Below are positions 1-64,000 of a stretch of 64,000 nucleotides of DNA, piece by piece (the stretch's first letter is position 1; each line of letters opens with the position of its first letter). Origin of the DNA: Heptranchias perlo (taxonomy: Eukaryota); NCBI RefSeq assembly GCF_035084215.1, contig NC_090340.1, positions 5,332,001-5,396,000 of the forward strand, in the 5' to 3' direction. The translations under genes were made by a program, and so were the position numbers. A model generated the notes under the pieces. That model was not told the DNA's origin and did no database searches. It saw only the letters and a list, made by a program, of their open reading frames with translations.

Positions 1-3000
1 GTGGTGACCAGAATTGTACACAGTACTCAAGCTGTGGTCTAACCAATGTTTTATACAATTCCAGCATAACCTCCCAGCTCTTATATTCTATACCTCGGCT
101 AATAAAGGAAACTATTCTATATGCCTTCTTAACCACTTTATTTACCTGTCCTGCTATCTTCAGGGATCTGTGGACATGCAATCCAAGGCCCCTCACTTCC
201 TCTACACCTTTCAGTATCCTCCCATTTATGATGTACTCCCTTGCCTTGTTTGCCCTCTTCAAATGTATTACCTCACACTTCTCTGAGTTGAATTCCATTT
301 GCCAATTTTCTGCCCACCTGACCAGTCCATTGATATCTTGTTGCAACCTACAGCTTTCCTCCTCATTACCAAACACACGGCCAATTTTTGTGTCGTCTGG
401 AAACTTCTTAATCATGCCCCCTATTTTTAAGTTCAAAACATTAATAGATATCACAAATAGCTTGGGACCCAGTTCTGAGCCCTGTGGAACTCCACTGGAA
501 ACAGCCTTCCAGTCAGAAAAGCACCTGTCGACCGTTACCCTTAGATTCCTGCCACTGAGCGAATTTTAGATCCAACTTGCCACTTTCCGTTGGATGCCAT
601 GGGCATATACTTCTTCACCAGTCTGCCATGTGGGACCTTGTCAAAAGCCTTGCTAAAATCCATATAGACTTTCACAAACGTGCTACTCTCATCGACCCTC
701 CTTGTTACCTCCTCAAAAAATTCCATCAAGTTAATCAAACATGACCTTCCCTTCACAAATTCATGCTGACTGTCCTTGATTACTCGGTGCATTTCTAAGT
801 GACGGCTTATTCTATCCCTCAGAATTGATTCCAATAATCTGCCCACAACCGAGGTTAGGCTGACTGGTCTGTAACCACTCGGTCTATTCCTCGCTCCCCT
901 TTTAAACAATGATACTATATTAGCAGTCCTCCAATCCTCCAGCACCACGCCAGTATCCAGTGAAGATTGGAAAATGATGGTTAAAGCCTCCGTTATTTCC
1001 TCCCTTGCTTCTTTTAACAGCCTGGGATACATTTTATCCGGACCTGGCAATTCATTTACTTTCAACGATGCTAAACCACTTAATATTTCTTCTCTCACTA
1101 TGTTTATCCCATATAATATTTCACACCCCTCCTCCTTAACTACAAAGTCTGCATTGTCCCTCTCTTTTGTGAAGACACACCAACGTATTAATTAAGAACC
1201 ATACCAACATTTCCCGCCTCAACACATAGGCTACCTTTTTGGTCTCCAATAGGCCTTACTCTTTCCTTAGTTATCCTCTTGCTCTTGATGTATTTATAAA
1301 AAATCCTTGGGTTTTCCTTGAGTTTGCTTGCCAATATATTTTCGTGCCCTGTCTTTGTTTTCCTAATTTCCTTTTAAATTTCAACCCTGCACTTTTTATA
1401 CCCCTCCAGGCTATCTGTAGTATTGAGTTCTCGGGTCTGACATAAGCTATTCTTTTCTTCCTTATCTTACTCTGCATGCTCCTTGACATCCAGGAGGCTC
1501 TCGGTTTGGCAGCTCCACCCTTTATCTTTGTGGGAACATGTTTACTCTGCACCCCTTGACTCTTCCCCTTAAATGCCTCCCTGTACTCTGACATTGATTT
1601 ATCCACAAGTAGCTGCTTCCAGTCCACTTTTGCTAAATTACTTTCTGGCTTAGTAAAATTCGTCTTTCCCCAATTGATAACTTTAACTCCTGTTCTGTCC
1701 TTGACCTTTTTCTATAACTATGCTAAAACTAACTGAATTATGATCACTACCACCAAAATGCTCTCCTTCCACCTGCCCAGCCTCATTATCTAAAACTAAA
1801 TCCACAACTGCCATCCCTTGTTGGGCTTCCAACGTACTGACTAAAAAAAGTTCTCCTGAATGCAATTCAAGAATTTTGCACCCTTTATACCCTTCGCACT
1901 GCTAGTGTTCCAGTTACTATTAGGGTAGTTGAAATCCCCTACTATTACTGCCCTACTGTTTTTGCACTTCTCAGAAATTTGCCTACATATTTGCTCCTCT
2001 ATCTCACTTTGACTGTTTGGGGGTCTATAATACATTCCCAGTATTGTGACTGTCCGTTTCTTTATTCCGTAACTCAACCCATTTGGCCTCATTTGATGTT
2101 CCTTCTCACATATCATCCTTCCTCACAGTTGTAATTGCTTTTTTTAAAAACAAAATTGCCACTCCCCCTTCATTTTTATCGCCTTCTCTATCTCGTCTGA
2201 AAACCATGTAACCAGGAACGTTGAGCTGCCATTCCGGCCCCTCTTTAAGCCATAATACTGTAGTAGCTAAGATATCATATTGCCACGTATCTATCTGCGC
2301 CCTCAGCTCATCTACCTTATTCACTATACTCCTTGCATTCAGATATAAACCTTTAAGCACTGCCAAACTCCTTTGCTGTTTATTTTGTAACCTTTATTTG
2401 CTCTGCATTTATCAGTCAATAACTATTTTAATGCCTTCTATCTCCAGTTCTGATTCCGTCCTTTTGATTCTACACTGAGGTTCCTATCCTCCTGCCAAGC
2501 TACTTTAAACCCTCCCCAACAGCACTAGCAAACCTCCCAGCAAGGGTATTGGTCCAGACCTTCTTGAGGTGCAACCCATCGGGCTTGTACAAGTCCTATC
2601 TCCCCCAGAACCGGTCCCAATGCCCCAGGAATTTAAAATCCTCCCTCCTGCACTTCTCCAGCCACATATTCATCTGTTGTATCCTCCTATTGCTATTCTC
2701 ACTAGCGCTTGGCACCGGTAATAATTGGAGATGACTACCTTTGAGGTCCTGCTTCTTAGTCTCTTTCCTAACTCCTTAAAATATTTCTGCAGGACCTCAT
2801 CCCCCTTTCTACCTATGTTGTTGGTACAGATATGGACCACGACCTCTGGCTGTTCACCCTCCCCCTCCAGGACGTTCTTCAGCTGCTCAGTGACATCCTT
2901 GACCCTGGCAACAGTAAGGCAACATACCATTCTGGACTCATGTCTGCAGCCGCAGAAGCGCCTGTCTGTTCCTCTAACTATAGAATCCCCTATCACTATT

Positions 3001-3620
3001 GCCCTGCTGACCTTCCTCCTCCCTTCCTGTACAGCTGAGCCACTCATGATGCAATGGTCTTGGCTCTGGTTGCACTCTGCAAAGGAACCCTCTCCCTCAT
3101 CAGTATTCAGAATTGAATACTGGTTAGAGAGTGAGATGCACTCAGGGGACCCTTGCACTATCTGCCAGGTCCTCCTTGTCTGCCTGGCTCGAGCTCCTCC
3201 AGCTGACGGCACGTGCTGCAGCTGTGGCTGTCCAGGACAGGAGAAGCGTCCTCGTTTTCCCACATGGCACAGGATGTGCATTCCACGGTTCTGAGCTGCC
3301 CTGCCATGCCTCGATTTATTAGATTCTGAACTAAACTTAATCGAAATTAAGTAAAGACTTAAAAAAATTCACCAACTACCCACCAATCACAGAAGAGAAA
3401 GAACAGTAATACTCACCAACCAATCAACTACCTGGATTCCTTTGACGTCACTCTTTCAAATGTCTGCCTGTGGTGAGTGATCAAACCTCTCTCCTCCCGC
3501 TCGAAATCTCGATCTCGAGCCTTCTCTATTAAACCTCTCCTCCCGCTGGAACTCTCGATTTCATGCCTCCTCTTCATGCCACTTTCCTCCCGCTCTGAAG
3601 GGAAAAACAAGACAGCAATG
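1..3620 (-). mobile_element. Near full-length degenerate CR1 LINE (ORF1 SGNH esterase, APE endonuclease, RT; 3' end runs off the window)
   Basis: ORF1 AIVIGDSIVRG...VVVHICTNNI (2670-3281). Endonuclease YLNARSI, YYRPP, VGDFNYP (1841-2366). RT YRPVSLTS, YMDFSKAFDKVPH (541-1098). Many frameshifts. Confidence 0.95.
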
Positions 3621-5348: not shown

Positions 5349-6312
5349 TACCGCCCTCCATGTTGAGTACCAGTTGGAGGAAGCACTGAGGGTAGCCAGG
5401 GCACAGAATTTACTCTGGGTGGGGGACTTCAATATCCTTCACCAAGACTGACTGAGCTGGCCGAGTTCTGATGGGCATAGCTGCCAGACTGGGCCTGCGG
5501 CAGGTGGTCAGCGAACCAACTCGAGGGAAACATCTACATGAACTCGTCCTCACCAATCTACCTGTCGCAGATGCATCTGTCCATGACAGTATTGGTAGGA
5601 GTGACCACCGCACAGTCCTCGTGGAGACGAAGTCCCCTCTTCGCACTGTGGACACCATCCAACGTGTTGTGTGGCACTAACACCGTGCTAAATGGAATAG
5701 GTTCAGAACAGATGTAGCAGCTCAAAACTGGGCATCCGTGAGGCATTGTGGGCCATCAGCAGCAGCAGAATTGTATTCCAGCACAATCTGTAACGTCAAG
5801 GCCCGTCATATTCCTCACTCTACCATTACCAACAAACCAGGGGATCAACCCTGGTTCAATGAGGAGTTCAGAAGAGCATGCCAGAAGCAATTTCAGGCGT
5901 ACCAAAAAAATAGGTCCCAAACTGGTGCAGCTACAACTCAGGACTACATGCATGCTAAACAGAAGAAGCAACATGCTATAGACAGAGCTAAGCAATCCCA
6001 CAACCAACGGATCAGATCAAAGCTCTGCAGTCCTGTCACATCCAGTCGTGAAAGGTGGTAGACAATTAAACAACTAATGGGAGGAGGAGGCTCTGTAAAC
6101 ATTCCCATCCGCAATGATGGCGGAGTCCAGCACGTGAGTGCAAAAGACAAGGATGAATTGTTTGTAACCATCTTCAGCAAGAAGTGCCGAGTGGACGATC
6201 CATCTCAGCCCCCTCCCGATATCCCCACCATCACAGAAGCCATTATTCAGGCAATTCGATTCACTCCACATGATATCAAGGAACGACTGGATGCACTGGA
6301 TAGAGCAAAGGC
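5349..6312 (+). mobile_element. Fragment of the second ('family B') LINE, endonuclease to linker region
   Basis: LRQVVSEPTRG...GRSDHRTVLV and PGDQPWFNEE; colinear with 61170-62130 on -. Confidence 0.9.
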
Positions 6313-6934: not shown

Positions 6935-7070
6935 CCGGGAGAACCTTCACCACACGGATGCAGCGGTTCAAGAAGGCGGATCACCACCACCTTCTCAAGG
7001 GCAATTATGGATGGGCAATAAATGCTCGCCTTGCCATCGACGCCCACATCACATGAATGAATAAAACAAA
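6935..7070 (+). mobile_element. Isolated 3' tail of family-B LINE
   Basis: GCAGCGGTTCAAGAAGGCGG...GGGCAATAAATGC...GCCCACATC matches the tails at 34140-34258 and 49660-49770. Confidence 0.9.
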
Positions 7071-19939: not shown

Positions 19940-21560
19940 GATAAGGACGCAAGATGAAGGCCATTCCGGCCATCTAGCCCACCCTTCAATAAAAATCATC
20001 AATACCCCCAACATACCATCCAATTACCTTTTGAATATCATTAGAATATTATCCTCAACTAACCTACCAGGTATTAATTTATTTGTATGAAAAACTATTT
20101 CCCAGCATATGTCCTGAATTTGTCTTTAGACAGTTCATCCTGAATTTATTAAGTACCATTCTGCAATGCGGGTTAAGTGTTCAGGTACAACATTTTGCAA
20201 TTTATTTTCGTATGTGCTTCTACGACGTCTCTGCTCATATGCCTCTATTAAGGGAGGCTAGTCTGCAGTAGCCAGTTAGTTATGGTGCTTGGCTAGTAAT
20301 CCAGAGTTTGTGAGTTTAATTCCTATCATGGCAAGTCGGAAAATTCATTTCGTATAATTTGGTGGTTTATGGGCTGGCACGAGATGAAATAACATAAGCG
20401 CTGTTGGATTGTCATAAAAACCCAACTGGTTCATGAATGTGATTCGGGGAAGGGAACTTGCTACCTTACCAGTCCGACCCTACATGTTACTCCAGTCTCT
20501 AAAAGCAAGTAAGCATGGGCGACGAATGCGACCATTCCAGCTTTAAGCACGTCCTGAGAAAAATATTTAAAATCGATACCATTTTTTTAACATTTACTTG
20601 TAACTCAGTTCCACGTGAGACAATTAGTTAAAATTTCTCGTGCCAGTCCCCGTACACGTACAGTGGCTTGTGCTTCCCATGCCCCTGCATGACCAGGACT
20701 GAATACAAGGAGCTCCCTGACGAGAGCAGTATAAAGTTTCCGCATGATAACCTCAGACTTTAACACCAATTATTCGGCAGTGTAGCTCAGCATTGTGTTT
20801 CCTTCGTCAGTTGCTGGTTTGCAATGATTCGACATGGTCAATGTAGAGGCTACCCGCTCCCATATAATTTCCCACCTATTGACAATCTAATTCTGCACTA
20901 TTCATTAATTATGTTACATGTAACGTCTTGCATGTAACGTCTTGCACTTCTCCTAATCCATATTTTCTGCCAAAGTTCTATCCAGCTGCAAATATTATGT
21001 TATTCTTTATTTAATATCTGAATTACTTCCACAAGATGCAATCCCTTTCCCACCTTGAATGTGATTAATATTTTTACCAATATACTTTGAGTTCCTTAAT
21101 CCATTTCACCATTTTAGATAACATAGGCCAGGAGCTGGAGACAATCTTTAGCTCAACACCAACCTCCAGCTAATTTTCACTAGATTCTCTCTCAGCTTCT
21201 TTCAAATTGTACCCAGGAGGCCGACTCTATTAAGCCACTGTAGCATTATTAGTAGAAAGCGTTGTTAACATGGATTTATATGATATTATAGAATTGTTCA
21301 ACCTTTACCTAAAAACAAACAAACTGTTTAATTAAACAGGATCTGCTCTCAAAAGTCCTATTAGTCTTAAGCTAATTAAATAATTTTCAACAGTTTTGCA
21401 ATAGCTTGTTTCAAACGGCGGATTTGATGACTTTAGTTGTTGCCATTGCAAGATGTAATCGGTCTGTGATTACTCATATTACTTTTAGTGCCTGTTTTGA
21501 AAATCTAGTGAGCTCTTCCCTATATTACCGAATCTCTCGTGATGAGTCGAAGTACTTCAC
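19940..21560 (-). mobile_element. Old, highly decayed CR1 LINE pieces flanking a SINE
   Basis: AAGGCCATTCCGGCCCATC 3'-UTR motif at about 19960; RT-like antisense sequence at 20700-21560. Confidence 0.55.
20270..20570 (+). mobile_element. tRNA-headed SINE, an internally deleted derivative of family-B LINE
   Basis: Head CTTGG-CTAGTAA-TCCAG and GAGTTTAATTCC. Body GGATTGTCATAAAAACCCAACTGGTTCA...GGGAAGGGAAC matches the LINE 5' UTR (62660-62750, -). Tail GCATGGGCGACGAATGCG...CACGTCC matches the LINE 3' tail. Confidence 0.8.
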
Positions 21561-24587: not shown

Positions 24588-27500
24588 ATTAAGATAGAAA
24601 GTGAAGTCGTTACATCCGAAACTAGGGTCTTAAATCTAAAGAAAGGAAACTACGAAGATATGAGGAGTGAGTTGGCTATGATAGATTTGGAAGCTTCGTT
24701 AAAAGGCATGACGGCAATGGTTAACATTTAAGGATCGAATGCATGAATCGCAACAATACTACATTCCTTTCTGGGGCAAAAACACAAAAGCAAAAGGGGC
24801 TCAACCATGGCCAACAAAAGAAGTTAAGGATAGTATTAGATCCAAAGAAGAGTCACATAAAGTTGCCAGAAAAAGTAGCAAGCCTGAGGATTGGGAGCAG
24901 CTTAGAATTCAGCAAAAAAGGACCAAGAAATTAAGTGGCCAAAAATACAGTATGAGAGTAAACTTGCAAGGAACATAAACGTGGACTATAAAAACTTCTA
25001 CAAGTATGTAAAAATAAATAGATTAGTGAAGACAAATGTAGGTCCCTTACAGTTAGAAACTGGAGAATTTATAATGCGGAACAAGGAAGTGGCAGAGCAA
25101 TTAAATAAATACTTTGGTTCTGTCTTCACGGAAGAGAACGCAAAACGCTTCCCAAAAATGCTGGAAACCAAGGGACTAGTGAGAAGGAGGAATTTAAGGA
25201 AATTAGTATTCGTAAAAAAATAGTGCTGGAGAAATTAATGGGACTGAAAGCCGATAAATCCACAGGGCCTGATAATCTGCATCCCAGAGGACGAAAATTT
25301 CCAAATGGCCTTGAAGCCACTTTACATCCTCCTTACAATTCACGATCCCACCTAGTTTTGTGTCGTCGGCAAATTTGAAAAATATTATATTTGGTTCCCT
25401 CATCCAAATCATTGATATATTTTGTGAATAGCTGGGGTCCAAGCATTGATCCCTGCGGCACCCCACTTGTCACTGCCTGCCACCTTGAAAAAGACCGCAT
25501 TATTTTACTCCCTGTTTCCTGTCTGTTAACCAATTTTCAACCAATGCCAGTATGTTATCACCAATCCCATGTGCTTTAAGTTTGCACACTAACCTCTTAT
25601 GTGGGACTTTATCAAAGACCTTCTTAAAATCCAAATAAACCATATCCACCTGTTCTCATAGAGTCATAGAGTCATACAGCACGGATAGAGGCCCTTCGGC
25701 CCATCGTGTCCGCGCCGGCCATCAATCCCTCTCCACTCTAATCCCATATTCCAGCATTTGGTCCGTAGCCTTGTATGCTATGGCATTTCAAGTGCTCATC
25801 CAAATGCTTCTTGAATGTTGTGAGGGTTCCTGCCTCCACAACCCTTTCAGGCAGTGAGTTCCAGACTCCAACCACCCTCTGGGTGAAAAAGTTCTTTCTC
25901 AAATCCCCTCTAAACCTCCCGCCTTTTACCTTGAATCTATGTCCCCTTGTTATAGAACCCTCAACGAAGGGAAAAAGCTTCTTAGTATCTATCCTATCTG
26001 TGCCCCTCATAATTTTGTACACTTCAATCATGTCCCCCCTCAGCCTCCTCTGCTCCAAGGAAAACAAACCCAATCTTCCCAGTCTCTCTTCATAGCTGAA
26101 GCGCTCCAGCCCTGGTAACATCCTGGTGAATCTCCTCTGCACCCTCTCCAAAGCGATCACATCCTTCCTGTAGTGTGGCGACCAGAACTGCACACAGTAC
26201 TCCAGCTGTGGCCTAACCAGTGTTTTATACAGCTCCATCATAACCTCCTTGCCCTTATATTCTATGCCTCGGCTAATAAAGGCAAGTATCCCATATGCCT
26301 TCTTTACCACCTTATCTACCTGTTCCGCCGCCTTCAGGGATCTGTGAACTTGCACACCAAGATCCCTCTGACCCTCTGTCTTGCCTAGGGTCCTCCCATT
26401 CATTGTGTATTCCCTTGCCTTGTTAGTCCCTCCAAAGTGCATCACCTCGCACTTTTCCGGGTTAAATTCCATTTGCCACTGTTCTGCCCATCTGACCAAC
26501 CCATCTATATCGTCCTGCAGACTGAGGCTATCCTCCTCGCTATTTACCACCCTACCAATTTTTGTATCATCAGCGAACTTACTGATCATACCTTTTACAT
26601 TCATATCCAAGTCATTAATGTAGACCACAAACAGCAAGGGACCCAGCACCGATCCCTGTGGTACCCCACTGGCCACAGGCTGCCAGTCACAAAAACAACC
26701 TTCGACCATCACCCTCTGCCTTCTGCCACTAAGCCAGTTTTGTATCCAAAGTGCCAAGGCACCCTGGATTCCATGGGCTCGTACCTTCTTGACCAGTCTC
26801 CTGTGGGGGACTTTATCGAAGGCCTTACTGAAATCCATGTCTACCACATCCACTGCGTTACCCTCATCCAAACGCCTAGTCACCCCCTCAAAAAATTCAA
26901 TCAAATTAGTCAGACATGATCTTCTCTTGACAACGCCATGTTTACTATCCCTGATTAATCCTTGCTTCTCCAAGTGGAGACTAATTTTGTCCTTCAGAAT
27001 TTTTTCCAATAATTTTCCTACCACTGATGTTAGGCTCACTGGCCTGTAGTTCCCCGGTTTTTCCCTACTCCCCTTCTTGAATAATGGTACTACATTAGCG
27101 GTTCTCCAGTCCTCTGGCACATCCCCTGTGGCCAGAGAGGTTCTGAATATATGTGTTAGAGCCCCCGCAATCTCCTCCTTTCTCTCTTATCTTTTCAACC
27201 GGTTACATCCTCAAAAACTCCTGTAGGTTTGACAAACATGATTTCCCTTTCATAAATCCATGTTGACTTTGTCTAAACTCATTGATATTTTCTAAGCGCC
27301 CTGTTGTCTCATGCTTTATAATAAACTCTAGCATTTTCCCTACTACTGATATAGTAGGCAAACCGTTCTGTAGTTCCCCATTTTCTCTCTCCCTCCTCGT
27401 TTAAATAGTGTGGTTACATTTGCCACCCTCCAATCTGCAGGAACTGTTCCATAATCAATAGAATTTTGGAAGATGATAAACAATGCATCCATTATTTCCA

Positions 27501-32691: not shown

Positions 32692-34258
32692 AGGCACTGG
32701 ATACAGCAAAGGCTATGGGTCCCGACAACATCGCGGCTGTAGTGCTGAAGAATTGTGCTCCAGAATTAACCACGCCTCTAGCAAAACTGTTCCAGTGCAG
32801 CTACAACACTGGCATCTAACCGACAATGTGGAAAATTGCCCAGGTATGTCCTGTCTACAAAAAGGACAAATCCAATCCGGCCAATTGCAGCCTAATCAAT
32901 CTACTCTCAATCATCAGCAAAGTTATGGAAGGTGTCGTCGACAGTGCTATCAAGCGGCACTTATTTACTAATAACATGGTTACCGATGCTCAGTTTGGGT
33001 TCTTCCAGGACCATTCGGCTACAGACCTCATCACAGCCTTGGTCCAAACATGGACAAAAGAGCTGAATTCCAGAGGTGAGGTGAGAGTGACTGCCCTTGG
33101 CATCAAGGCAGCATTTGTCCCAGTGTGGCACCAAGGGGCCCGAGTAAAATTGAAGTCAATGGGAATTAAGGGGAAAACTCTGCAGTAGTTGGATTCATTA
33201 TTAGCACAAAGGAAGATGGTAGTAGTTGCTGGAGGGCAATCATCTCAGCCCCAGGAGATTGCTGCAGGAGTTCCTCAGGGCAGTGTCCGAGGCCCAACCA
33301 TCTTCAGCTGCTTCATCAATGATCTTCCCTCTATCATAAGTTCAGTAATGGGGATGTTTGCTGAAGATTGCACAGTGTTCAGTTCCATTCACAACCCCTC
33401 AGATTGTTGTAGTTGTCCGTGCCCGCTTGCAGCAAGACCTGGACAACATCCAGGCCTGGCCTGATAAATGACAAGTAACATTCGAGCTAGACAAGTGCCA
33501 GGCAACACCATCTCCAACCAGAGAGAGTCTAACCACCTCCCCTTGACATTCAACGGCATTAACATCGCCGAATCCCCCACCATCAACATCCTGGGGGTCA
33601 GTATTTACCAAAACCTTAACTGGATCAGGCACATAAATATTGTGGCTACAAGAGCAGGTCAGAGGCTGGGTATTCTGCGGCGAGTGTCTCACCTCCTGAC
33701 TCCCCAAAGCCTTTCCACCATCTACAAGGCACAAGTCAGGAGTGTGATGAAATACTTTGCACTTGCCTGGATGAGTGCCGCTCCAACAACACTGAAGAAG
33801 CTCGACACGATCCAGGACAAAGCAGCCCGCTTGATTGGCAACCCATCCACCACCCTAAACATTCACTTCCTTCACCACGGGCGCACCGTGGCTGCAGTGT
33901 GCCATCCACAGGATGCACTGCATCAACTCGTCAAGGCTTCTTCGACAGCACCTCCCAAACCCACGACCTCTACCACCGAGAAGGACAAGGGCAGCACGTG
34001 GGAATGACACCACCTGCACGTTCCCCTCCAAGTCTCAAAGCATCCCGACTTGGAAATATATCGCCGTTCCTTTATCGTCGCTGGATCAAAATCCTGGAAA
34101 TCCCTACCTAACAGTACCCTGCGAGAACCTTCACCACACGGACTGCAGCGGTTCAAGAAGGCGGGTCACTACCACCTTCTCAAGGGCAATTCGGGATGTG
34201 CAATAAATGCTGGCCTCGCCAGCGACGCCCACATCCCATGAACGAATATAAAAAAAAA
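32692..34258 (+). mobile_element. 5'-truncated family-B LINE (RT to poly-A)
   Basis: WKIAQVCPVYKK, GVPQGSVRGP, GMFAED; conserved tail and terminal A run. Confidence 0.95.
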
Positions 34259-44314: not shown

Positions 44315-44500
44315 TTATTATTATTATTTGTTCATGGGATGTGGACGTCGCTGGCGAGGCCAGCATTTATTCCCCATCCCAAATTGCCCTTCAGAAGGTG
44401 GTGTTGAGTCGTCTTCTTGAAACTCTGCAGTCTGTGTGGTGAGGGTTCTCCCACATGCTGTTTGGAAGGGTGTTCCAAGAATTTGACACAGCGACGAATA
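44315..44500 (-). mobile_element. 3' tail of family-B LINE
   Basis: Reverse complement of the conserved tail. Confidence 0.9.
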
Positions 44501-48855: not shown

Positions 48856-49770
48856 TCAGGCACATAGGCAGCATTCACTGATGATTGCACAGTTCCATTC
48901 GCAACCACTCATATAAGGAAGCAGTCCGCGCCCGCATGCAGCAAGATCTGGACAACATCCAGCTTGGGATGATAAGTGGCAAGTAACATTCGCGTCAGAC
49001 ATGAGCCAGGCGATGACCATCTCCAAAAAGCGAGAGTCGAAACCACCTCCCTTTGACATTCAACGGCATTACCATCGCCGAATCCCCCACCATCAAAATC
49101 CTGGGGGTCACCATTGACCAGAAACTTAACTGGACCAGCCACATAAATAATGTGGGTACAAGAGCAGGTCAGAGGCTGGGTAAATCTGCAGCGATTGACT
49201 CACCTCCTGACTTCACAAAGGCTTTCCACCTTCTACAAGGCACAAGTCAGGAATGTGTTGGAATACTCTCCACTTGCCTGGATGAGTGCAGCTCCAACTA
49301 TACTCAAGAAACTGGACACCATGCAGGACAATGCAGCCCGCTTGATTGGCGCCCCATCCACCGCCCTAAACATTCACTCCCTTCAACACCAGCGCACCAT
49401 GGCTGCAGGGTGTAACATCCACAGGAGGCACTGCAGCAACTCGCCAAGGCTTCTTCGACAGCACCTCCAAATCCCACGACATTTACCACATAGAAGGACA
49501 AGGGCAGCAGGCACATGAGAACAACACCCCCAACACGTTCTCCTCCAAGTCACACACCATCCTGACTTGGAAATATATCGCCGTTCCTTCATAGTCACTG
49601 TGTCAAAATCCTGGAACTCCCTACCTAACAGCAATGTGGGAGTACCTTCACCACACCGACTGCTGCGGTTCAAGAAGGCGGCTCACCACCACCTTCTCAA
49701 GGGCAATAAGGGATGGGAATAAATGCTGGCCTTGCCAGCGACGCCCACATCCCATGAACGGAAAAAAAAT
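48856..49770 (+). mobile_element. 5'-truncated family-B LINE inserted in retroviral pol
   Basis: Colinear with 33345-34258; ends in an A run. Confidence 0.95.
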
Positions 49771-56436: not shown

Positions 56437-59400
56437 GAGAGACAGGTAGAACTAGAATAAGAAATAGTAATGTATTAGGTGGGATCAGACTAACAGATAA
56501 TTCGAGAAGGTCTAAGATAGGTTTAGGGAACATGTGTGTAAACGCACGAAGCGTGGTATAAAAGGTTGGTGAGCTGCAGTCACATGGGAACATTTTGTAG
56601 TGGCGATAGCAGAGACCAGTCTCAAAAAAGGGCACGATTTGGTGCTAAATGTTCCTTGACACAAGGTGTTCAGGAAATATAGGGAAGATAGGACGGTTGG
56701 TGATGTGTGGCAGTATTGATTAAGGAGAATATTGCAATGCTGAAGAGAGAGGATGTCCTTGCGGAATCAAGGACAGAATCTCTTTGGTTAAGGTTAAGAA
56801 ACAACAGAGGTGCCATTGCAATATTAGATGTATTCTATAGGCCACCAACTCGTGGGAAGGATGTAGACGAGTAAATTCGCAGTGAAATTTCAGGGAGGTA
56901 CACTAACTATATAATAGTGATAATGGGGGCTTCAAGTATCCTAATATCGACTGGGATAGTAACACTTTAAAGGGCAAAGAGAGGGAGGAATTTCTGAAGT
57001 GTGTTCAGGGGAACTTTCTTGATCCGTATGTTTCTGGCTCAAAAAGTAAGGAGGCGAGGCGTTGATCGATTTGGTTCTTGGGAATGAGGTGGGTCAAGTG
57101 AAGCAAGTATCAGTGGGGAGCATTTAGTAAACAGTGATCATCGTACCTTAAGGTTTAGATTAGTTATGGAAATGGAACAAGGAGCAATCAAGAGGAGAGA
57201 CAATATCAGTGGGTTGAGAACGGATCTGGCTCGGGTAAATTGGGATGAATGATTGGCAGGCAAAACTGAAATCGAACAGTGGGCGGTCTTTAAAGAGGAG
57301 ATGGTTCGGGTGCCGTCTAGGTACATTCCCACAAGGGGAAATGTGGGGTAACCAAAGCCAGAGCTCTCTGAATGAAAAAAAGAGATAGAGAGTAAAATGT
57401 AGCAGGGAAAGGAGGCGTATGACAGATGTCAGGTTGAAAATACAAGTGAGAACCAGGCTGAATATACAAAATACAGAGGAGAAGTGAAAAGGGAAATAAG
57501 AAGGGCACAGAGAGAGTATGAGAATTAATTGGGGGCTAATAGACGGGAAACACAATTCTTCTATCGGCACATAAATAGTTAACGGGTAATAAGAGGAGGG
57601 TTGGGGCCACTTCTGGACCAAAAAGGAGATTTACATATGGCGACAGAGGGCACAGCTGAGGTACTAAATGAATACTTTGAATCTGTCCTTACCAAGGAAG
57701 ACGATGCTGCCAAAGTCGCAGTAAAAAAGGAGCGAGTTGAGATACTAGGTGGGCTAAAAATTGTTAACGAGAAGGGAATAGAAAGGCTTGCTGTACTTAA
57801 AGTAGATAAGTCACCCCGTCCGGATGGGGCGCATCTTAGGTTGCTGAGAGAAGTAAGGGTGGAAATTGTCTAGGTGCTGGCCATTATCTTCCAATCCTCT
57901 TCAGATACGAGGGTGGTGTCAGAGGACTGGTGAATTGCAAATGTTACACCCTTGTTCAAAAAAGGGTGTAACGTTAAACTCAGCAACTATAGGCCAGTCA
58001 GTTTAACCTTGATGGTGGGGGAGCTTTTAGAAACGATAATCCATGACAAAATAAATAGCCACTTGGACAAGTGTGGATTAATAAATCAACGTAAGCACGG
58101 AATTGTGAAACACAAATTGTGTTTCACGAATTTGATTGAGTTTTTTGATGAGGTCACAGAGAGGATTGACGAGGGCAACGCGGTTGATGTGTATATAGAC
58201 TTTGATCAAGCGCCACATAATCGGCTTGTCAGCAAAATTGAAGCCCATGAAATAAAAGGGCCAGTGGAAGCATGGATACGAAATCAGTTAAGTGACAGGA
58301 AACAGGGAATATTGGTGACCGGTTGTTTGTCGGACTGGAGGAAGGTATACAATGGTGTTCTCCAGGGGTCGGGACTAGGACCTTTGCTTTTTGATATACA
58401 TTAATGACATGGGCTTGGGTCTACGGGGCACAATTTCAAAATTTGCTGATGAAACAAAACTGGTAAGTGTAGCAAACCGTGAGAAGGATAGTAATAGACT
58501 TCAAGAAGGCATAGTCAGCGATATGGAAAGGTGGACACATGAGAGATTAAATTTAACGCAGAGAAGTGCGAAATAATACATTTCGGCAGGAAGAACGAGG
58601 AGAGGCAATATAAACTAAATGGTACAAATCTTAGGAAGGTGCAGGAACAGATAGACCTGTGGGTATATGTGCTCAAATTTGAAGGTGACTGTATAGATTG
58701 AGAAAGCGTTTAAAATGTATACGGGATCCTGGGTTTTATTAATAGAGGCATAGAGTAAAAATGCAAGGATGTAGTGATAACCTTATGTAAAACAATGGTT
58801 CAGCCACAACTGGAGTATTGTTCCCAATTCTGGGCACCACACTTTAGGAAGGATGAGAAGGCCTTAAGGAAGGTGCAGAAAAGATTTACTAGAATGGTCC
58901 CAGGGATGAAGGACTTCCGTTTTGTGGATGGACTGGAGCAGTTGAGTGTGTTCTCCTTAGAGCAGAAAAGGTTGAGAGGAGGTTTGATAGAGGTGTTCAA
59001 AATCATGTAGGGTTTAGATAAAGTAAATAAAGAGAAACTGTTCCCATTGGTGGAAGGGTAGAGAAGCAGAGGAAACAGATTTAAAGTGATTGGCAAAAGA
59101 ATCAAAGGCGATGTGAGGAATTGCCGTTTTGATCTGGAATTCGCTGCCTGAGAGGGTGGTGAAAGCAAATTCAAACGTGGCTTTCAAAAATGAATTGGAT
59201 AGATACTTGAAGGGAAAAAAATGCAGGGCTAGGTGAATGAGTGTGAGAATCGGACTAACTGGATTACTCTTAAAAACAGCCGGCGCATGCTCGATGGGCC
59301 AAATGGCCTCCCACTGCGCTGTAGCGATTCTATGACACTGAACTGTTGCCATCAATCCAATGTATAAAAATACACATAATAGGTAGAATAGAGAACGCCA

Positions 59401-59639
59401 TATCGTGGTTGACAGCCATAGTGTTATATGTGGTTAATGGACAGATAATAGTCTCTGCAATACAAACGGTATTTTCAGGTTGACACTGAAGTGTGTGAAG
59501 ATACAGTAAAGGACATTTTATTACGACCTGGCGCCAGAATGTCTGTATTTAGATTGGGTGTATGTGAGAATAATACAATTCTGTTTAATATATATTACAA
59601 TAGATCTAGAAGTGAAGGCCATGAGGATGAAATGCAGTC

Positions 59640-62600
59640 AGCCATGGAATGTGGGCTTGGCTGACAATGCCAGCATTGGTTGACCATCCCTAATTGCTCT
59701 TGAGAAGGTGGTGGTGAGCCGTCTTCTTGAACCGCTGCAGTCAGTGCGGTGAAGGCACTCCCACAGTGCTGTTCAGTAGGGAGTTCCAGGATTTTGACAC
59801 TGTGACGATGAAGGAACGGCAATATCTTTCCAACTCGGGATGGTGTGTGACGTGGAGGGAAACGTGCGGGTGGTGTTGTTCCCATGTGCCTGCTGCCCTT
59901 GTCCTGCTAGGTGGTAGATTTCGCGGGTTTGGGAGGTGCTGTCGAAGAAGTTTTGGCGAGTTGCTGCAGTGCATCCTGTGGATGGTACACACTGCAGCCT
60001 CTGTGCGCCGACGCTGAAGAGAGTGAATATTTAGGGTGCTGGATAGGGTGCCAATCAAGCGGGCTGCTTTGTCTTGAATGCTGTCGAGCTTCTTGAGTGT
60101 TGTTGGAGCTGCAGTCATCCAGGCAAGTGGAGGGTCTTACATCACATTCCTAACTTGTGCCTTGTAGAAACTGGGAAGGCTTTGGTCAGTCAGGAGTTGA
60201 GTCAATCCCCGCTGAATACCGAGCCTCTGACCTGCTCTTGCAGCCACAGTATTTATGTGGTTGGTTGAGTTAAGTTACTAGTCAATGATGACGCCTAGGA
60301 TGTTGCGGCATTCGGCGATGGTAATGCCGTTGAATGACAAGGGGAGATGGTTAGATTCTCTCTTGTTAGAGATGGTCATTGCCTGGCACTTGTCTGGCGC
60401 GAATTTTACTTGCCACTTATCAGCCCAAGCCTGGATTTTGCCCAAGTCTTGCTGCATGCGGGCATGGACTGCTTCGATATCTGAGGGGTTGCGAATGGAA
60501 CTGAACACTGTGCAATTATCAGCGAACATTTCTATTTCTGACCTTATGATGGATGGAAGGTCATTGATGAAGCAGCTGAGGATGGTTGGGCCATTGACTC
60601 TGCCCTGAGGATCTCCTGCAGCAATGTCCTGGCGGTGAAATGATCGGCCTCCAACAACCACCATCTTTGTGCTAGGTACAACTCCAGCCACTGGAGAGCT
60701 TTCCCTCTGATTCCAATTGACTTCAATTTTACTAGGGCTCCTTGTTGCCGCACTCGGTGAAATGCTGCTTGATGTCAAGGGCAGTCACTCAAACCTCACC
60801 TCTGGAATTCGGCTCTATTTCCATGTTTGGACCAAAGCTTTAATGAGGTCTGGAGTCGAGTGGCCCTGGCGGAACCCAAACTGATCATCGGTGAGTAGGC
60901 TATTGGTGAGTAAGTGCCGCTTGATAGCACTGTCGACGAAAACTTCCATCACTTTACAGATGACTGAAATTAGACTGATTTTATTGCAATTAGCCGGATT
61001 GGATTTGTCCTGCTTTTTGTGGACAGGACATTCCTCGGCAATTTTCCACATTGTCGGGTAGATGCCAGTGTTGTAGCTGTACTGGAACGGTTTGGCTAGA
61101 GGTGCGGCTAATTCTGGAGCACAAGTCTTCAGCACTCCAGCCGAGATGTTGTCGGGGCCCATAGCCTGTTGTAGCCTGTGCACTCAGTCGTTTCTTGATA
61201 TCACGTAGAGTGAATCGAATTGGCTGAAGACTGGCTTCTGTGATGTTGGGAATATCGGGAGGAGACCGAGATAGATCATCTACTCGGCACTTCTGGCTGA
61301 AGATGGTTGCAAACGCTTCAGCCTTGTCTTTTGCACTCACGTGCTGTACTCTGCCATCATTGAGGATGGGTCTCTTCATAAAGCCTCCTCCTCCCGTTAG
61401 TTGTTTAATTGTCCAGCACCATTTATGACTGGATGTGGCAGGACTGCAGAGTTTTGATCTCATCCGTTGGTTGTGGAATCGCTTAGCTCTCTCTATGGCA
61501 TGTTGCTTCCGCTTTTAGCATGCATTTACTCCTATGTTGTAGCTTCATCAGGTTGGCACCTCATTTTTACGTACGCCTGGTGCTGCTCCTGGCATGCTCT
61601 TCTACACTCCTCATTGAACCAAGGTTGATCCCCAGGCTTGTTGGTAATGGTAGAGTGAGGATTATGCCGGGCCATGAGTTTACAGATTGTGCTGGAATAA
61701 AAATCTGCTGCTGATGGTCCAAAGAACCTCATGGATACCCAGTTTTGAGCTGCTAGATCTGTTCTTAATCCATCCCATTTAGCACGGTGGCAGTGCCACA
61801 CAATACATTGGATTGTGTCTTCAGTGTGAAGACGGGCCTTCTTCTCCACAAGGACTGTGTGGTGAGCACTCTTGCCAATACTGTCATGGACAGATGCATC
61901 TGCGAGAGGTAAATTGGTGAGGACGAGGTCAAGTAGGGTTTCCCTCGTGTTGGTTCGCTCACCACCTGCCGCAGGCCCAGTCTGGCAATTATTTCCTTCA
62001 GGGCTCGGCCAGCTCAGTCAGTAATGGCGCTAACGAGCCACTCTTGGTGATGGACATTAAAGTCCCCCAGCCAGAGGACATTCTGTGTCCTTGCTACCCT
62101 CAGTGCTTCCTCCAAGTGGTGCTCATCATAGAGGAGGACTGATTCATCATCTGAGGGAGGGCGGTAGGCCGTTATCAGCAGAATGTTCCTTCGCCCATTT
62201 TTGACCTGATGCCTTGAGATTTCATGGGGTCTGGAGTCAATTTTGTGAAAACCCAGGGCCACTCCCTCCTTACTGTATATCAGTGTACCACCACCTCTGG
62301 TGGTCTGTCCTGCCGGTGGGTCAGCACATACCCAGGGATGGTGATGGAAGAATCTGGGACGTTGGTTGAAATGTATGATTTTGTGAGTATGGCTATGTCA
62401 GGCTGTTGCTTGACTAGTCTGTGGGACAGATCTCCCAATTTTGGTACAGGTCCACAGATGTTTACGAGGAGGACTTTGCAGGGTCGACTGGGCTTGGTTT
62501 GTCTTTGTCGTGTCCGGTGCCTAGCGGTCCCATGCCAGGTGGACCGTCCGGTTTTATTCTTATTATGACTTTTCGTAGAGGGACTGTACAACTGATTGGC

Positions 62601-62920
62601 TTGCTAGGCCATGTCAGAGGGCGACTCAGATTATGAATCAACCACATTGCTGTGGGTCCAGAGTCACATAAATGCCATACCGGTTAAAAACTGCGGGTTT
62701 CCTTCCCTAAAGGACATTAGTGAACCAGATGGGTTTTTATGACAATCCGCTGGTTTCATGGCCACCATTTCTGATAATGATTATTTTGTATTAATTGAAT
62801 ATTATTAATTGAATTTAAATTCCCCAGCTGCCGTGGCGGGATTTGAACTCATGACTCGGGATTATTTAGTCCAGGCCTGCTGGATTACTATTCCAGTAAA
62901 ATAACCACTATGCTACCGTA
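59640..62920 (-). mobile_element. Full-length family-B LINE: tRNA-like head, short UTR, single EN-RT ORF, no ORF1
   Basis: Endonuclease KVLLVNICG, YRPPS, LGDFNVHH; RT WKIAEECPVHKK, FINDLP, MFADN; conserved tail at 59640-59740. Confidence 0.92.
62828..62920 (-). promoter_or_regulatory. tRNA-Thr(AGT)-like Pol III internal promoter at the LINE 5' end
   Basis: A box TAGCATAGTGG (62905-62915); stem-loop CTGGA-ATAGTAA-TCCAG; B box GAGTTCAAATCC (62839-62850). Confidence 0.8.
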
Positions 62921-63439
62921 TGCTTGGGAGGACACATATATAGAGGCTTCAGTCAGATCACTGAACTTCTAGAGTCTGCAATCCGGTAGATCAGTAGGTG
63001 CGCTGAGCCACAGCTCTGTATTAGGATTAGTCCTACGATGGGCATGGAACATTACCTCATGGTACCCTCGCAACTCCCTGAACACTTGTGTAGAAATCAA
63101 ATTAGATTAGGCTTTCTTCATCTGTCTATCTCAGGTCCAAGTTCCAGAAGTCGCTAATCAGGAGCATCTCATGAAGCCTTTAATGGGCCAATACAGCCTA
63201 CGTACAAGACCAGTCCATATAGACGGTAGTGCTAACACCGGGGCGAGAAAATGTGATATTTGTATCAGGCAGTATCACTTTCTGTAAGCTACCGGGCACA
63301 ATAAAACTACAATGCTGTTTGAAATATTCGCTTACAAGGTGTGTTCCTGAAGTAGCTGGTGATCTTGCAATGTTAGTTGAAAAGAACTTTGGCATTTGGG
63401 AAGATGCTGTTGATTATAGGTTGAAAGAACTCGGGTATG

Positions 63440-64000
63440 ATGCCGTTGTGGTTATGTTACTGCTTTAGCAATCTAGAGGCTTGGACTAGAAGTCCACAGA
63501 CCTGCATAAATATGAGGGAATAACCTACTTGCCCTCATCCTCACCAATCTAGATGTCAATTATGCATTTGTCCATGGCAGCGTCGGTAGGAGTGACCACG
63601 GCACAGTCTTTATCGAGACCAATTCCTGTCTTCACACTGAGGACACCCTCCTCGTGCTATGTAGCACTACCACCATGCTAAATGGGATATATTAATAACA
63701 GATCTATCCTCTCGAAGCTGGGCATTCGTGAGGCGCTGTGCCTATAATTGTACTCCACCACAATCAGCAAGCTCATAGTCCAACGTATCCCTCATCCCTG
63801 CATCACCACCAAGGCTGACGACCAACACTGGTTCAATGACAATAGTAAATGAGCATGCCAGGCGGAGCACCTGGCATACCTGAAAATGAGGTGCCCGTCT
63901 GGTAAAGCTACAACACAGAACTGCATGCATGCTAAACGTGGAAGCAGCATGCTTTGGATAGAGCGAAGCGATCCCATAACCAACGGATCAGACCAGTGCC
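63440..64000 (+). mobile_element. Older family-B LINE copy: partial tRNA-like head joined to the endonuclease C-terminus
   Basis: GTGGTTATGTTACTG...AGCAATCTAGAGGCTTGGACTA head, then GRSDHGTVFIET. Confidence 0.8.

Follow-up and report, generated by a model that had tools for sequence, protein, structure and literature searches.

The stretch of the Heptranchias perlo genome treated here (64,000 nt; NCBI RefSeq assembly GCF_035084215.1, contig NC_090340.1, positions 5,332,001 to 5,396,000 of the forward strand) is referred to as the window, and all coordinates are those of the window. Its minus strand, read from 62930 to 59640, contains a retrotransposon that resolves by self-blast into a single repeat unit of 3.29 kb, composed of a tRNA-like head, a leader, an ATG, a frame for an apurinic/apyrimidinic endonuclease (APE) and a reverse transcriptase (RT), and a tail. 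The unit is a full-length but dead copy of a long interspersed nuclear element (LINE) that is abundant in elasmobranchs and has a single APE-RT open reading frame (ORF) and no ORF1. The head, which is of the type found in short interspersed nuclear elements (SINEs), physically belongs to this LINE repeat unit. Element positions are counted from 62930 (position 1) as read on the minus strand. The parts of the unit are as follows.

59640-62930, minus strand: whole unit, a decayed full-length LINE copy (self-blast; contig depth for the boundary)
62826-62925, minus strand: tRNA-derived SINE-type head with A box, anticodon-like arm and B-box-like motif
62613-62825, minus strand: leader, made of an AT-rich linker (about 62770-62825) and then a core common to the SINE
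62556-62930, minus strand: 5′ part of the LINE that is also found in SINE forms (element positions about 1-300 to 1-375; contig joints, SINE alignment)
62610-62612, minus strand: candidate start codon, G at −3 and +4 (start of whale-shark model P0002)
61780-62470, minus strand: APE region with stops and frameshifts (Pfam Exo_endo_phos_2; tblastn with distant APE-bearing proteins)
59693-61057, minus strand: RT and C-terminal region, broken, followed by the probable family stop at 59690-59692 (Pfam RVT_1; tblastn)
59640-59752, minus strand: tail common to the LINE copies and the SINE, degenerate in the full copy (five copies and the SINE compared)

Further members of the family lie on the plus strand of the window; T4+ denotes a run of four or more T on the sense strand.

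20263-20560, plus strand: partner SINE, with tRNA-like head, LINE leader (element positions about 54-284) and LINE tail (local alignment, blast)
63428-64000, plus strand: older LINE copy, ~75% identical, running off the window end (blast, local alignment)
5355-6302, plus strand: 5′-truncated copy, element positions 797-1759, 0 T4+ (blast)
32694-34258, plus strand: 5′-truncated copy, element positions 1750-3288, 0 T4+, mostly in one frame (blast, tblastn)
48874-49770, plus strand: 5′-truncated copy, element positions 2405-3288, 0 T4+ (blast)

The tRNA-like head

The A box is an exact match to TAGCATAGTGG at 62905-62915 (element positions 16-26), and the B-box-like motif is GAGTTCAAATCC at 62839-62850 (element positions 81-92); a 20-mer spanning the latter occurs once in the window, with 0 occurrences expected. 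The gap of ~54 nt between the two boxes is tRNA-like, as in type-2 genes of RNA polymerase III (Pol III). The anticodon-like arm CUGGA / AUAGUAA / UCCAG (62880-62896) gives on folding a stem of 5 bp with a loop of 7 nt, and the loop at the same arm of the SINE copy reads CUAGUAA in the alignment. All of these had been proposed in a preliminary description made from the letters of the window (A box at 62905-62915, B box at 62839-62850, loops ATAGTAA here and CTAGTAA in the SINE copy), and they are confirmed by the exact match, the box-like motif, the fold, and the alignment, respectively. The LINE unit shares with SINE2 elements a 5′ head that carries Pol III A and B boxes, and the repeat begins at the tRNA-like +1 position.

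Like the heads of SINEs, that of the LINE derives from a tRNA without being a tRNA gene, since neither ARAGORN (0 tRNA genes in the whole window) nor Rfam calls it. Rfam gives 0 matches at the gathering threshold and, by E-value, no tRNA match for the LINE head at E<=10, while for the SINE head (20264-20334) the tRNA model gives 15.6 bits (E=2), under the gathering score of 29. The head folds no better than its shuffled versions (z=+1.16) and forms no cloverleaf.

Position of the head in the repeat unit

Contigs from four runs (7,630-266,239 contigs per run) were aligned to the window at 80% likeness. The summed word depth, which is no copy number and was used for the repeat boundary only, stays at 12-38 across the flanking stretches 62937-63300 and 59400-59530 and amounts to 3x10^5 to 3x10^6 over 59662-62936; the contigs of the locus itself end inside the element on both sides. 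Repeated DNA starts at the 5′ end of the head and nothing is repeated upstream. The join of leader and APE near 62470 is bridged by four contigs of other copies from three organisms (two from run X21 and one each from X5 and X6), each with 40-42 differences from the window copy. The same join is read in frame in five of the 12 protein fragments (P0002, P0003, P0005, P0008, and P0014), which were traced to gene models from Rhincodon typus, the whale shark. P0002 begins at the ATG at 62610-62612 and matches element positions 319-630 with 60% identity (E=2e-38).

Three other fragments (P0007, P0009, and P0026, the last traced to whale shark) show a short APE N-terminal piece fused in frame after unrelated host-like sequence, and are either exonised LINE fragments or artefacts of the gene models.

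Both repeat types are very abundant, which would favour chance neighbours, that is, an unrelated SINE lying beside or nested with a 5′-truncated LINE. The anatomy disfavours this explanation, and we find it scarcely credible. By blast there is neither a SINE tail nor a second leader between head and ORF, so the head does not belong to a SINE alongside; what forms the body of the SINE is the LINE leader; other copies and species show the leader-to-APE join again; and both of the LINE copies that reach furthest toward the 5′ end are headed, in a window of 64 kb with two heads and one SINE only. The second headed copy, at 63428, consists of a head fragment (element positions ~5-77) fused at a GAG microhomology to position ~979, late in the APE, and both of its parts are ~75% identical to the full copy. 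Two origins come into question for this copy, an internal deletion in an old headed LINE or a truncated LINE that sits within a SINE. With only two heads and one SINE in 64 kb, it argues for an association of head and LINE above the chance rate. The preliminary description had placed a second copy near 63440 and taken it to repeat the junction of head and coding region: it does begin with the head, but the head-leader-ORF junction is not repeated, the head being joined to the middle of the APE at ~979. The conclusion drawn there, that head and ORF do not meet as chance neighbours, nevertheless stands on the boundary, the contiguity, and the recurrent leader-to-APE join.

Headed copies might also arise, dead on arrival, from a headless master LINE that starts in the leader, if RT or recombination switched to a SINE within the shared leader. 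Switching is the accepted source of SINE chimeras and has been used to explain the SINEs of RTE and Vingi elements that combine a head with LINE parts (PMC5786205, PMC7245038), and in the copy at 63428 head and LINE meet at a microhomology. A shallow head bin in run X5 (organism B) points the same way: over 62806-62936 its summed contig depth falls short of that in the neighbouring leader bins by a factor of 10-20, which means either that the head is more than 20% diverged in organism B or that many copies there have no head; head and leader bins are similar in depth in organisms A and C. Against such a switch, no other upstream 5′ end within 62470-62930 is found among the best-supported 24 of 12,544 loose ends, those read in this interval being diverged versions of the same head and leader, and the scarcity of T4+ in the ORF described below would be left unexplained. 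We consider this origin improbable.

Coding region, leader, and start codon

The frame is broken in the window copy. Across the element region there are 26 ORFs of at least 60 amino acids, and the longest genuine piece of the frame has 166 amino acids. Pfam matches Exo_endo_phos_2 (2.5e-6, piece 62014-62262) and RVT_1 in two separate pieces (2.5e-11 and 1.1e-4), an RT ORF elsewhere in the window aligns by tblastn to element positions 1874-3265, and together with tblastn of distant proteins the Pfam pieces give a single ORF that holds both the APE and the RT domain. Distant APE proteins start to match at element positions 355-466 and continue through 630, the conserved APE N-terminus beginning near 62470. 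With ~220 nt from head to ATG this leaves no room for an ORF1, in agreement with the earlier statement that the APE follows ~450 bp past the head.

The frame probably ends, as far as can be judged from the frame of the copy at 32694, with the TAG at 59690-59692, ~50 nt short of the 3′ end. This triplet reads TCG, AAG, TAT, and TTG in the copies at 32694 (34195-34197), 48874, 6937, and 44497; the majority at each position is TAG, lost in four of the five copies, each time by another change.

A target-site duplication was looked for by eye in both flanks of this old copy, and only a non-adjacent TCCTC came to light. Protein searches with the N-terminal piece returned one match and then 29, every one a fragment or a distant relative. 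When metagenome and viral contigs were scanned for exact patterns of the element, 0 matches resulted, and of 233 matches to a protein pattern in metagenome contigs 0 were confirmed.

The leader spans ~220 nt between the head and the ATG at 62612. Its best-conserved stretch, 62697-62748, is 85% identical over 52 nt to 20406-20457 of the SINE (blast); a search of the literature (Creative Commons-licensed PMC papers and bioRxiv) for a 20-nt motif of the leader found no paper that contains it. The linker that follows the B box (62770-62825, ~55 nt) is ~80% A+T, yet its T runs are never longer than 3. Several AUGs lie upstream within the leader. The window copy has a TAG at 62604-62606, two codons past the ATG, where P0002 has Gln. 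Given the good context of the AUG at 62610-62612, an ORF that lacks an AUG or depends on an internal ribosome entry site (IRES) is not required, and with folding no better than that of shuffled sequences (z=0.05) the leader of the full copy lends no support to an IRES-like structure.

Partner SINE and tail

The partner SINE at 20263 is the LINE unit minus its ORF, that is, head, leader, and tail. We base this on the SINE itself and on joints found in the contigs, both of which equal the two ends of the LINE. Contigs of runs X21 and X6 carry the joints 59730→62629 and 59752→62587, in which head and leader up to element position ~300-345 are followed by the final 90-110 nt; the 18-32 letters that separate both sides of a joint look by eye like further diverged leader. 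The layout of a bipartite SINE (head, 5′ part of a LINE, 3′ end of a LINE) is thus present in the SINE and in the contig joints alike. In size (100-700 bp) and lack of coding capacity the SINE2 description fits 20263-20560 and does not fit the 3.29-kb unit that codes for APE and RT. A seven-T run at 20576-20590, ~25 nt past the A-rich end of the SINE, is where a Pol III transcript of the SINE would terminate.

The tail is matched by blast at 6937-7055 and 44333-44497. Four of the five tails end in AATAAA or in A-rich runs of 4-9 A, some of them interrupted, and that of the full copy is degenerate; no terminator of the TCTTT type was seen in the tails of the five copies and the SINE. The pieces at 5355-6302 and 6937-7055 (element positions 797-1759 and 3169-3288) lie 635 nt apart, compared with 1410 nt in the element, and probably stem from a single insertion that has been internally deleted or rearranged.

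Runs of T on the sense strand

Five T4+ runs are present in the full copy (62898-62901, 62686-62690, 62248-62251, 61699-61703, and 60939-60942), a number that matches the shuffle expectation (5.4 for mononucleotide and 4.65 for dinucleotide shuffles). The preliminary description had counted five as well, with one of them placed at 60909, ~30 nt off its actual position at 60939-60942. Two of the runs are absent at the homologous sites of the copies at 5355, 63514, and 32694, and a third is missing both from the SINE and from the majority sequence of loose ends at 62698. The run at 62248-62251 is removed by the majority letters of the contigs at 62246-62250, and from that at 62898-62901 the head fragment at 63448 and the SINE depart (by eye). 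All five are thus private to the full copy, and the earlier view of such runs as post-insertion changes holds as far as their absence elsewhere is concerned. Counting likewise bears out 0 TTTT in each of the four plus-strand copies, and 5 T4+ in the LINE at 25657-27185, for which at least five had been noted.

Whether T4+ is depleted depends on the null. Compared with mononucleotide and dinucleotide shuffles, single copies give P values of 0.05-0.84. Under a second-order Markov (trinucleotide) null, with 1.1-2.8 runs expected, the deficit fades (P 0.06-0.34); this null is conservative because its TT-to-T transition is learned from copies already without TTTT. In the codon-aware test synonymous codons were permuted with protein and codon usage kept, in frames set by distant homologues. 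It covered 2151 non-redundant in-frame nt (residues 35-315 of the copy at 5355, and residues 0-234, 266-400, and 436-505 of the copy at 32694); left out were the full copy (frameshifts), the copies at 48874 and 63514 (redundant or short), and two frameshifted stretches of the copy at 32694. Here 0 T4+ were observed and 3.34 expected (P=0.013), and a shuffle of codon order gave P=0.009. The same codon-aware test gave 10 exact T3 runs against 13.4 expected (P=0.135) and 11 A4+ runs against 9.4.

Three other LINE RT ORFs of the window served as controls.

25738-27120, minus strand: control LINE ORF, Pfam RVT_1, 460 amino acids
52046-53167, minus strand: control LINE ORF, Pfam RVT_1, 373 amino acids
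541-1098, minus strand: control LINE ORF, Pfam RVT_1, 185 amino acids

They are 23-32% identical to the RT of the tRNA-headed family (tblastn), and the 460-amino-acid ORF is uninterrupted. Pooled over 3063 nt they have 12 T4+ against 13.8 expected (P=0.31). The choice between TTT and TTC for Phe in the headed family does not differ from that in other NNY codon pairs (Fisher P=0.66). In the codon-aware test the scarcity of T4+ thus holds at about the 1% level, and it is peculiar to T, to runs of at least four, to the strand, and to the tRNA-headed family.

Transcription of the element

The explanation that we rank first, at somewhat short of an even chance, is that Pol III makes the full-length 3.3-kb RNA. 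The head would be inherited as part of the RNA that is transcribed and reverse transcribed, and would act as a portable internal promoter. Pol III would start at the tRNA-like +1 position and could cross the 3.3-kb body since the master lineage would be without a T4+ terminator. Transcription would end past the element, with the AATAAA and A-rich tail giving the 3′ end used by the RT, and the AUG at 62612 would serve for the translation of part of the RNA. Two features of the anatomy point to this course. As the head lies inside the copied unit, transcription should begin at or ahead of its first base, the point from which Pol III sets out on type-2 promoters, and the T4+ deficit is the trace expected of selection against Pol III terminators.

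A number of points weigh against Pol III. The tRNA searches (ARAGORN over the whole window, Rfam by E-value) miss the head, which folds no better than shuffled sequence, and the shallow head bin of organism B and the several upstream AUGs of the leader count on the same side. The full copy of the window is the single full-length example seen of the head-leader-ORF junction, and the scans of metagenome and viral contigs gave no second. The T4+ deficit, which fades under the trinucleotide null, rests on P~0.01 over 2.15 kb and effectively on one ancestral sequence. The N-terminus of P0005 was tried as translated head and dropped (P=0.11 over 2000 shuffles). Uncapped Pol III RNA is reportedly translated poorly, a result attributed to Gunnery and Mathews in 1995. 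Pol III is in addition held to be poorly processive, which is given as the reason for the shortness of SINEs and of TRIMp3 elements (PMC10886601).

The head may be a genuine part of the LINE and the RNA still be made by RNA polymerase II (Pol II), starting at or just upstream of the head from promoter elements in head or leader; we regard this as rather unlikely, and as the strongest of the rivals. The A and B boxes would then be kept for the SINE, with exchange of 5′ parts between LINE and SINE, or TFIIIC bound to them would keep chromatin open, and the scarcity of T4+ would come from composition and chance. In support of Pol II, the AUG at 62610-62612 has a good context, the AATAAA of the tail would be an ordinary Pol II poly(A) signal, and with the trinucleotide null the scarcity of T4+ does not reach significance. 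Promoters for Pol II can reportedly be carried by tRNA-derived SINEs, as Ferrigno et al. are said to have found in 2001 for B2. All LINEs studied are moreover taken to be Pol II transcripts (PMC10886601, PMC5786205). What Pol II does not account for is that the deficit is specific to strand and family (P=0.013, with normal controls) and that the unit starts at the tRNA-like +1; the upstream AUGs of the leader would also be awkward for cap-dependent scanning.

By analogy with other LINEs, the head could instead be an RNA-processing signal, at which a cut by RNase P would free a defined 5′ end from read-through host transcripts. Ribozymes resembling that of hepatitis delta virus stand at the 5′ ends of R2, RTE, and L1Tc and occur in several LINE clades (PMC5786205), and ~38-39% of the CR1-like and Zenon-like LINEs of whale shark are intronic (bioRxiv 10.1101/443036). 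RNase P processing is nevertheless very improbable in our view, as the head has no cloverleaf fold and is missed by tRNA models, and avoidance of T4+ would not be predicted.

Relation to known elements

By its features, the LINE with the Pol III-type head is probably a member of the elasmobranch "Zenon" lineage of the CR1 group, which is unannotated. The likeness to Zenon, a match of features and not of an RT tree, comprises the single APE-RT ORF, the lack of ORF1, the relatives in whale shark, and, less clearly, the A-rich tails in four of five copies. Rex1 and Zenon elements are universally without ORF1, and a poly-A tail is described as unique to Zenon among CR1-group elements (PMC13343379). 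Among vertebrates Zenon is given for elasmobranchs, coelacanth, and hagfish only; the elasmobranch form, recognised in the whale-shark assembly, is stated to be in no repeat repository, and elements of the CR1 group account for 22-34% of the genomes of sharks and rays (PMC13343379). A "CR1-Zenon like LINE" has been named in whale shark (bioRxiv 10.1101/443036). A difference lies in the head, as "tRNA" and "promoter" occur 0 times each in the main text of PMC13343379, which hence describes none. The lack of ORF1, treated as unusual in the preliminary description, is ordinary in L2 (PMC3880073) as well as in Zenon and Rex1 (PMC13343379).

L2 elements such as ZfL2-2 may encode ORF2p alone and retrotranspose (PMC3880073). 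The ORF1-less ZfL2-2 and UnaL2 resemble the present LINE in size (~3.3-3.6 kb), in coding for ORF2p only, and in having partner SINEs with a common 3′ tail, and differ by microsatellite-type tails, by having no known tRNA head, and by having been assayed from Pol II promoters. HE1/HER1 (V-SINE) was weighed as family too; its tail is probably different.

Bipartite SINEs (Bov-tA, CoeSINE4/5, WALLSI, SINE1-1_EBu) consist of a head and of 5′ and 3′ LINE parts (PMC5786205, PMC7245038), a make-up that is seen again in the SINE at 20263 and in the contig joints. The two papers give it for RTE and Vingi LINEs alone, with headless autonomous partners; in contrast, the partner LINE here is headed and belongs, to judge by features and not by a tree, probably to the CR1 group rather than to RTE or Vingi. 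The TRIMp3 elements Cassandra, Helenus, and Ajax are non-SINE retrotransposons that likewise have a Pol III promoter derived from a small RNA, but they are of the long terminal repeat type, non-coding, and 0.3-1.3 kb long, and their autonomous partners are argued to need Pol II (PMC10886601). SacSINE1, one of the DeuSINEs of sharks (463 bp, with tRNA head and a Deu domain of ~330 nt, present in whale shark; PMC2746220, PMC4824008, PMC5499810) is similar in size and layout to the SINE form here, compared by description only, and differs in its tail, which is reported to be L2-2_CM-like.

The T+ SINEs are a further point of comparison, as the tails here have AATAAA just ahead of the A-rich end. 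AAUAAA-dependent polyadenylation of Pol III transcripts is said to have been found for T+ SINEs by Borodulina and Kramerov in 2008. Those elements are mammalian and non-coding, and the tails here differ from theirs in having no TCTTT-type terminator.

The literature searched (scope as for the leader motif) contained no description of an autonomous LINE that is tRNA-headed or driven by Pol III. The LINE family itself has probably been described (as Zenon), SINEs that combine the ends of a LINE are established, and a headed, T4+-poor autonomous LINE is undescribed in that literature.

Implications

The working rule, as set out in recent papers of a Repbase curator, is that LINEs are transcribed by Pol II and SINEs by Pol III, with the length of SINEs capped by Pol III processivity (PMC10886601, PMC5786205). 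A coding, autonomous LINE with an inherited SINE-type Pol III head blurs this rule. In its strongest form, which we put forward with considerable doubt, an abundant elasmobranch LINE would be a Pol III gene, whose terminator-free 3.3-kb RNA would serve as both APE-RT messenger and template, and the SINE would be the unit with its ORF deleted. The origin of such a SINE would take one step, as an internal deletion alone would suffice, and the pattern in which the body of a SINE is the 5′ part of a LINE would be extended from RTE and Vingi to the CR1 group. If the leader (~300 nt) is the Deu domain, the bodies of a SINE superfamily, and by exaptation amniote enhancers, would trace to such a LINE leader. 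The family may also offer a natural system for asking whether Pol III makes a translatable 3-kb RNA in vivo.

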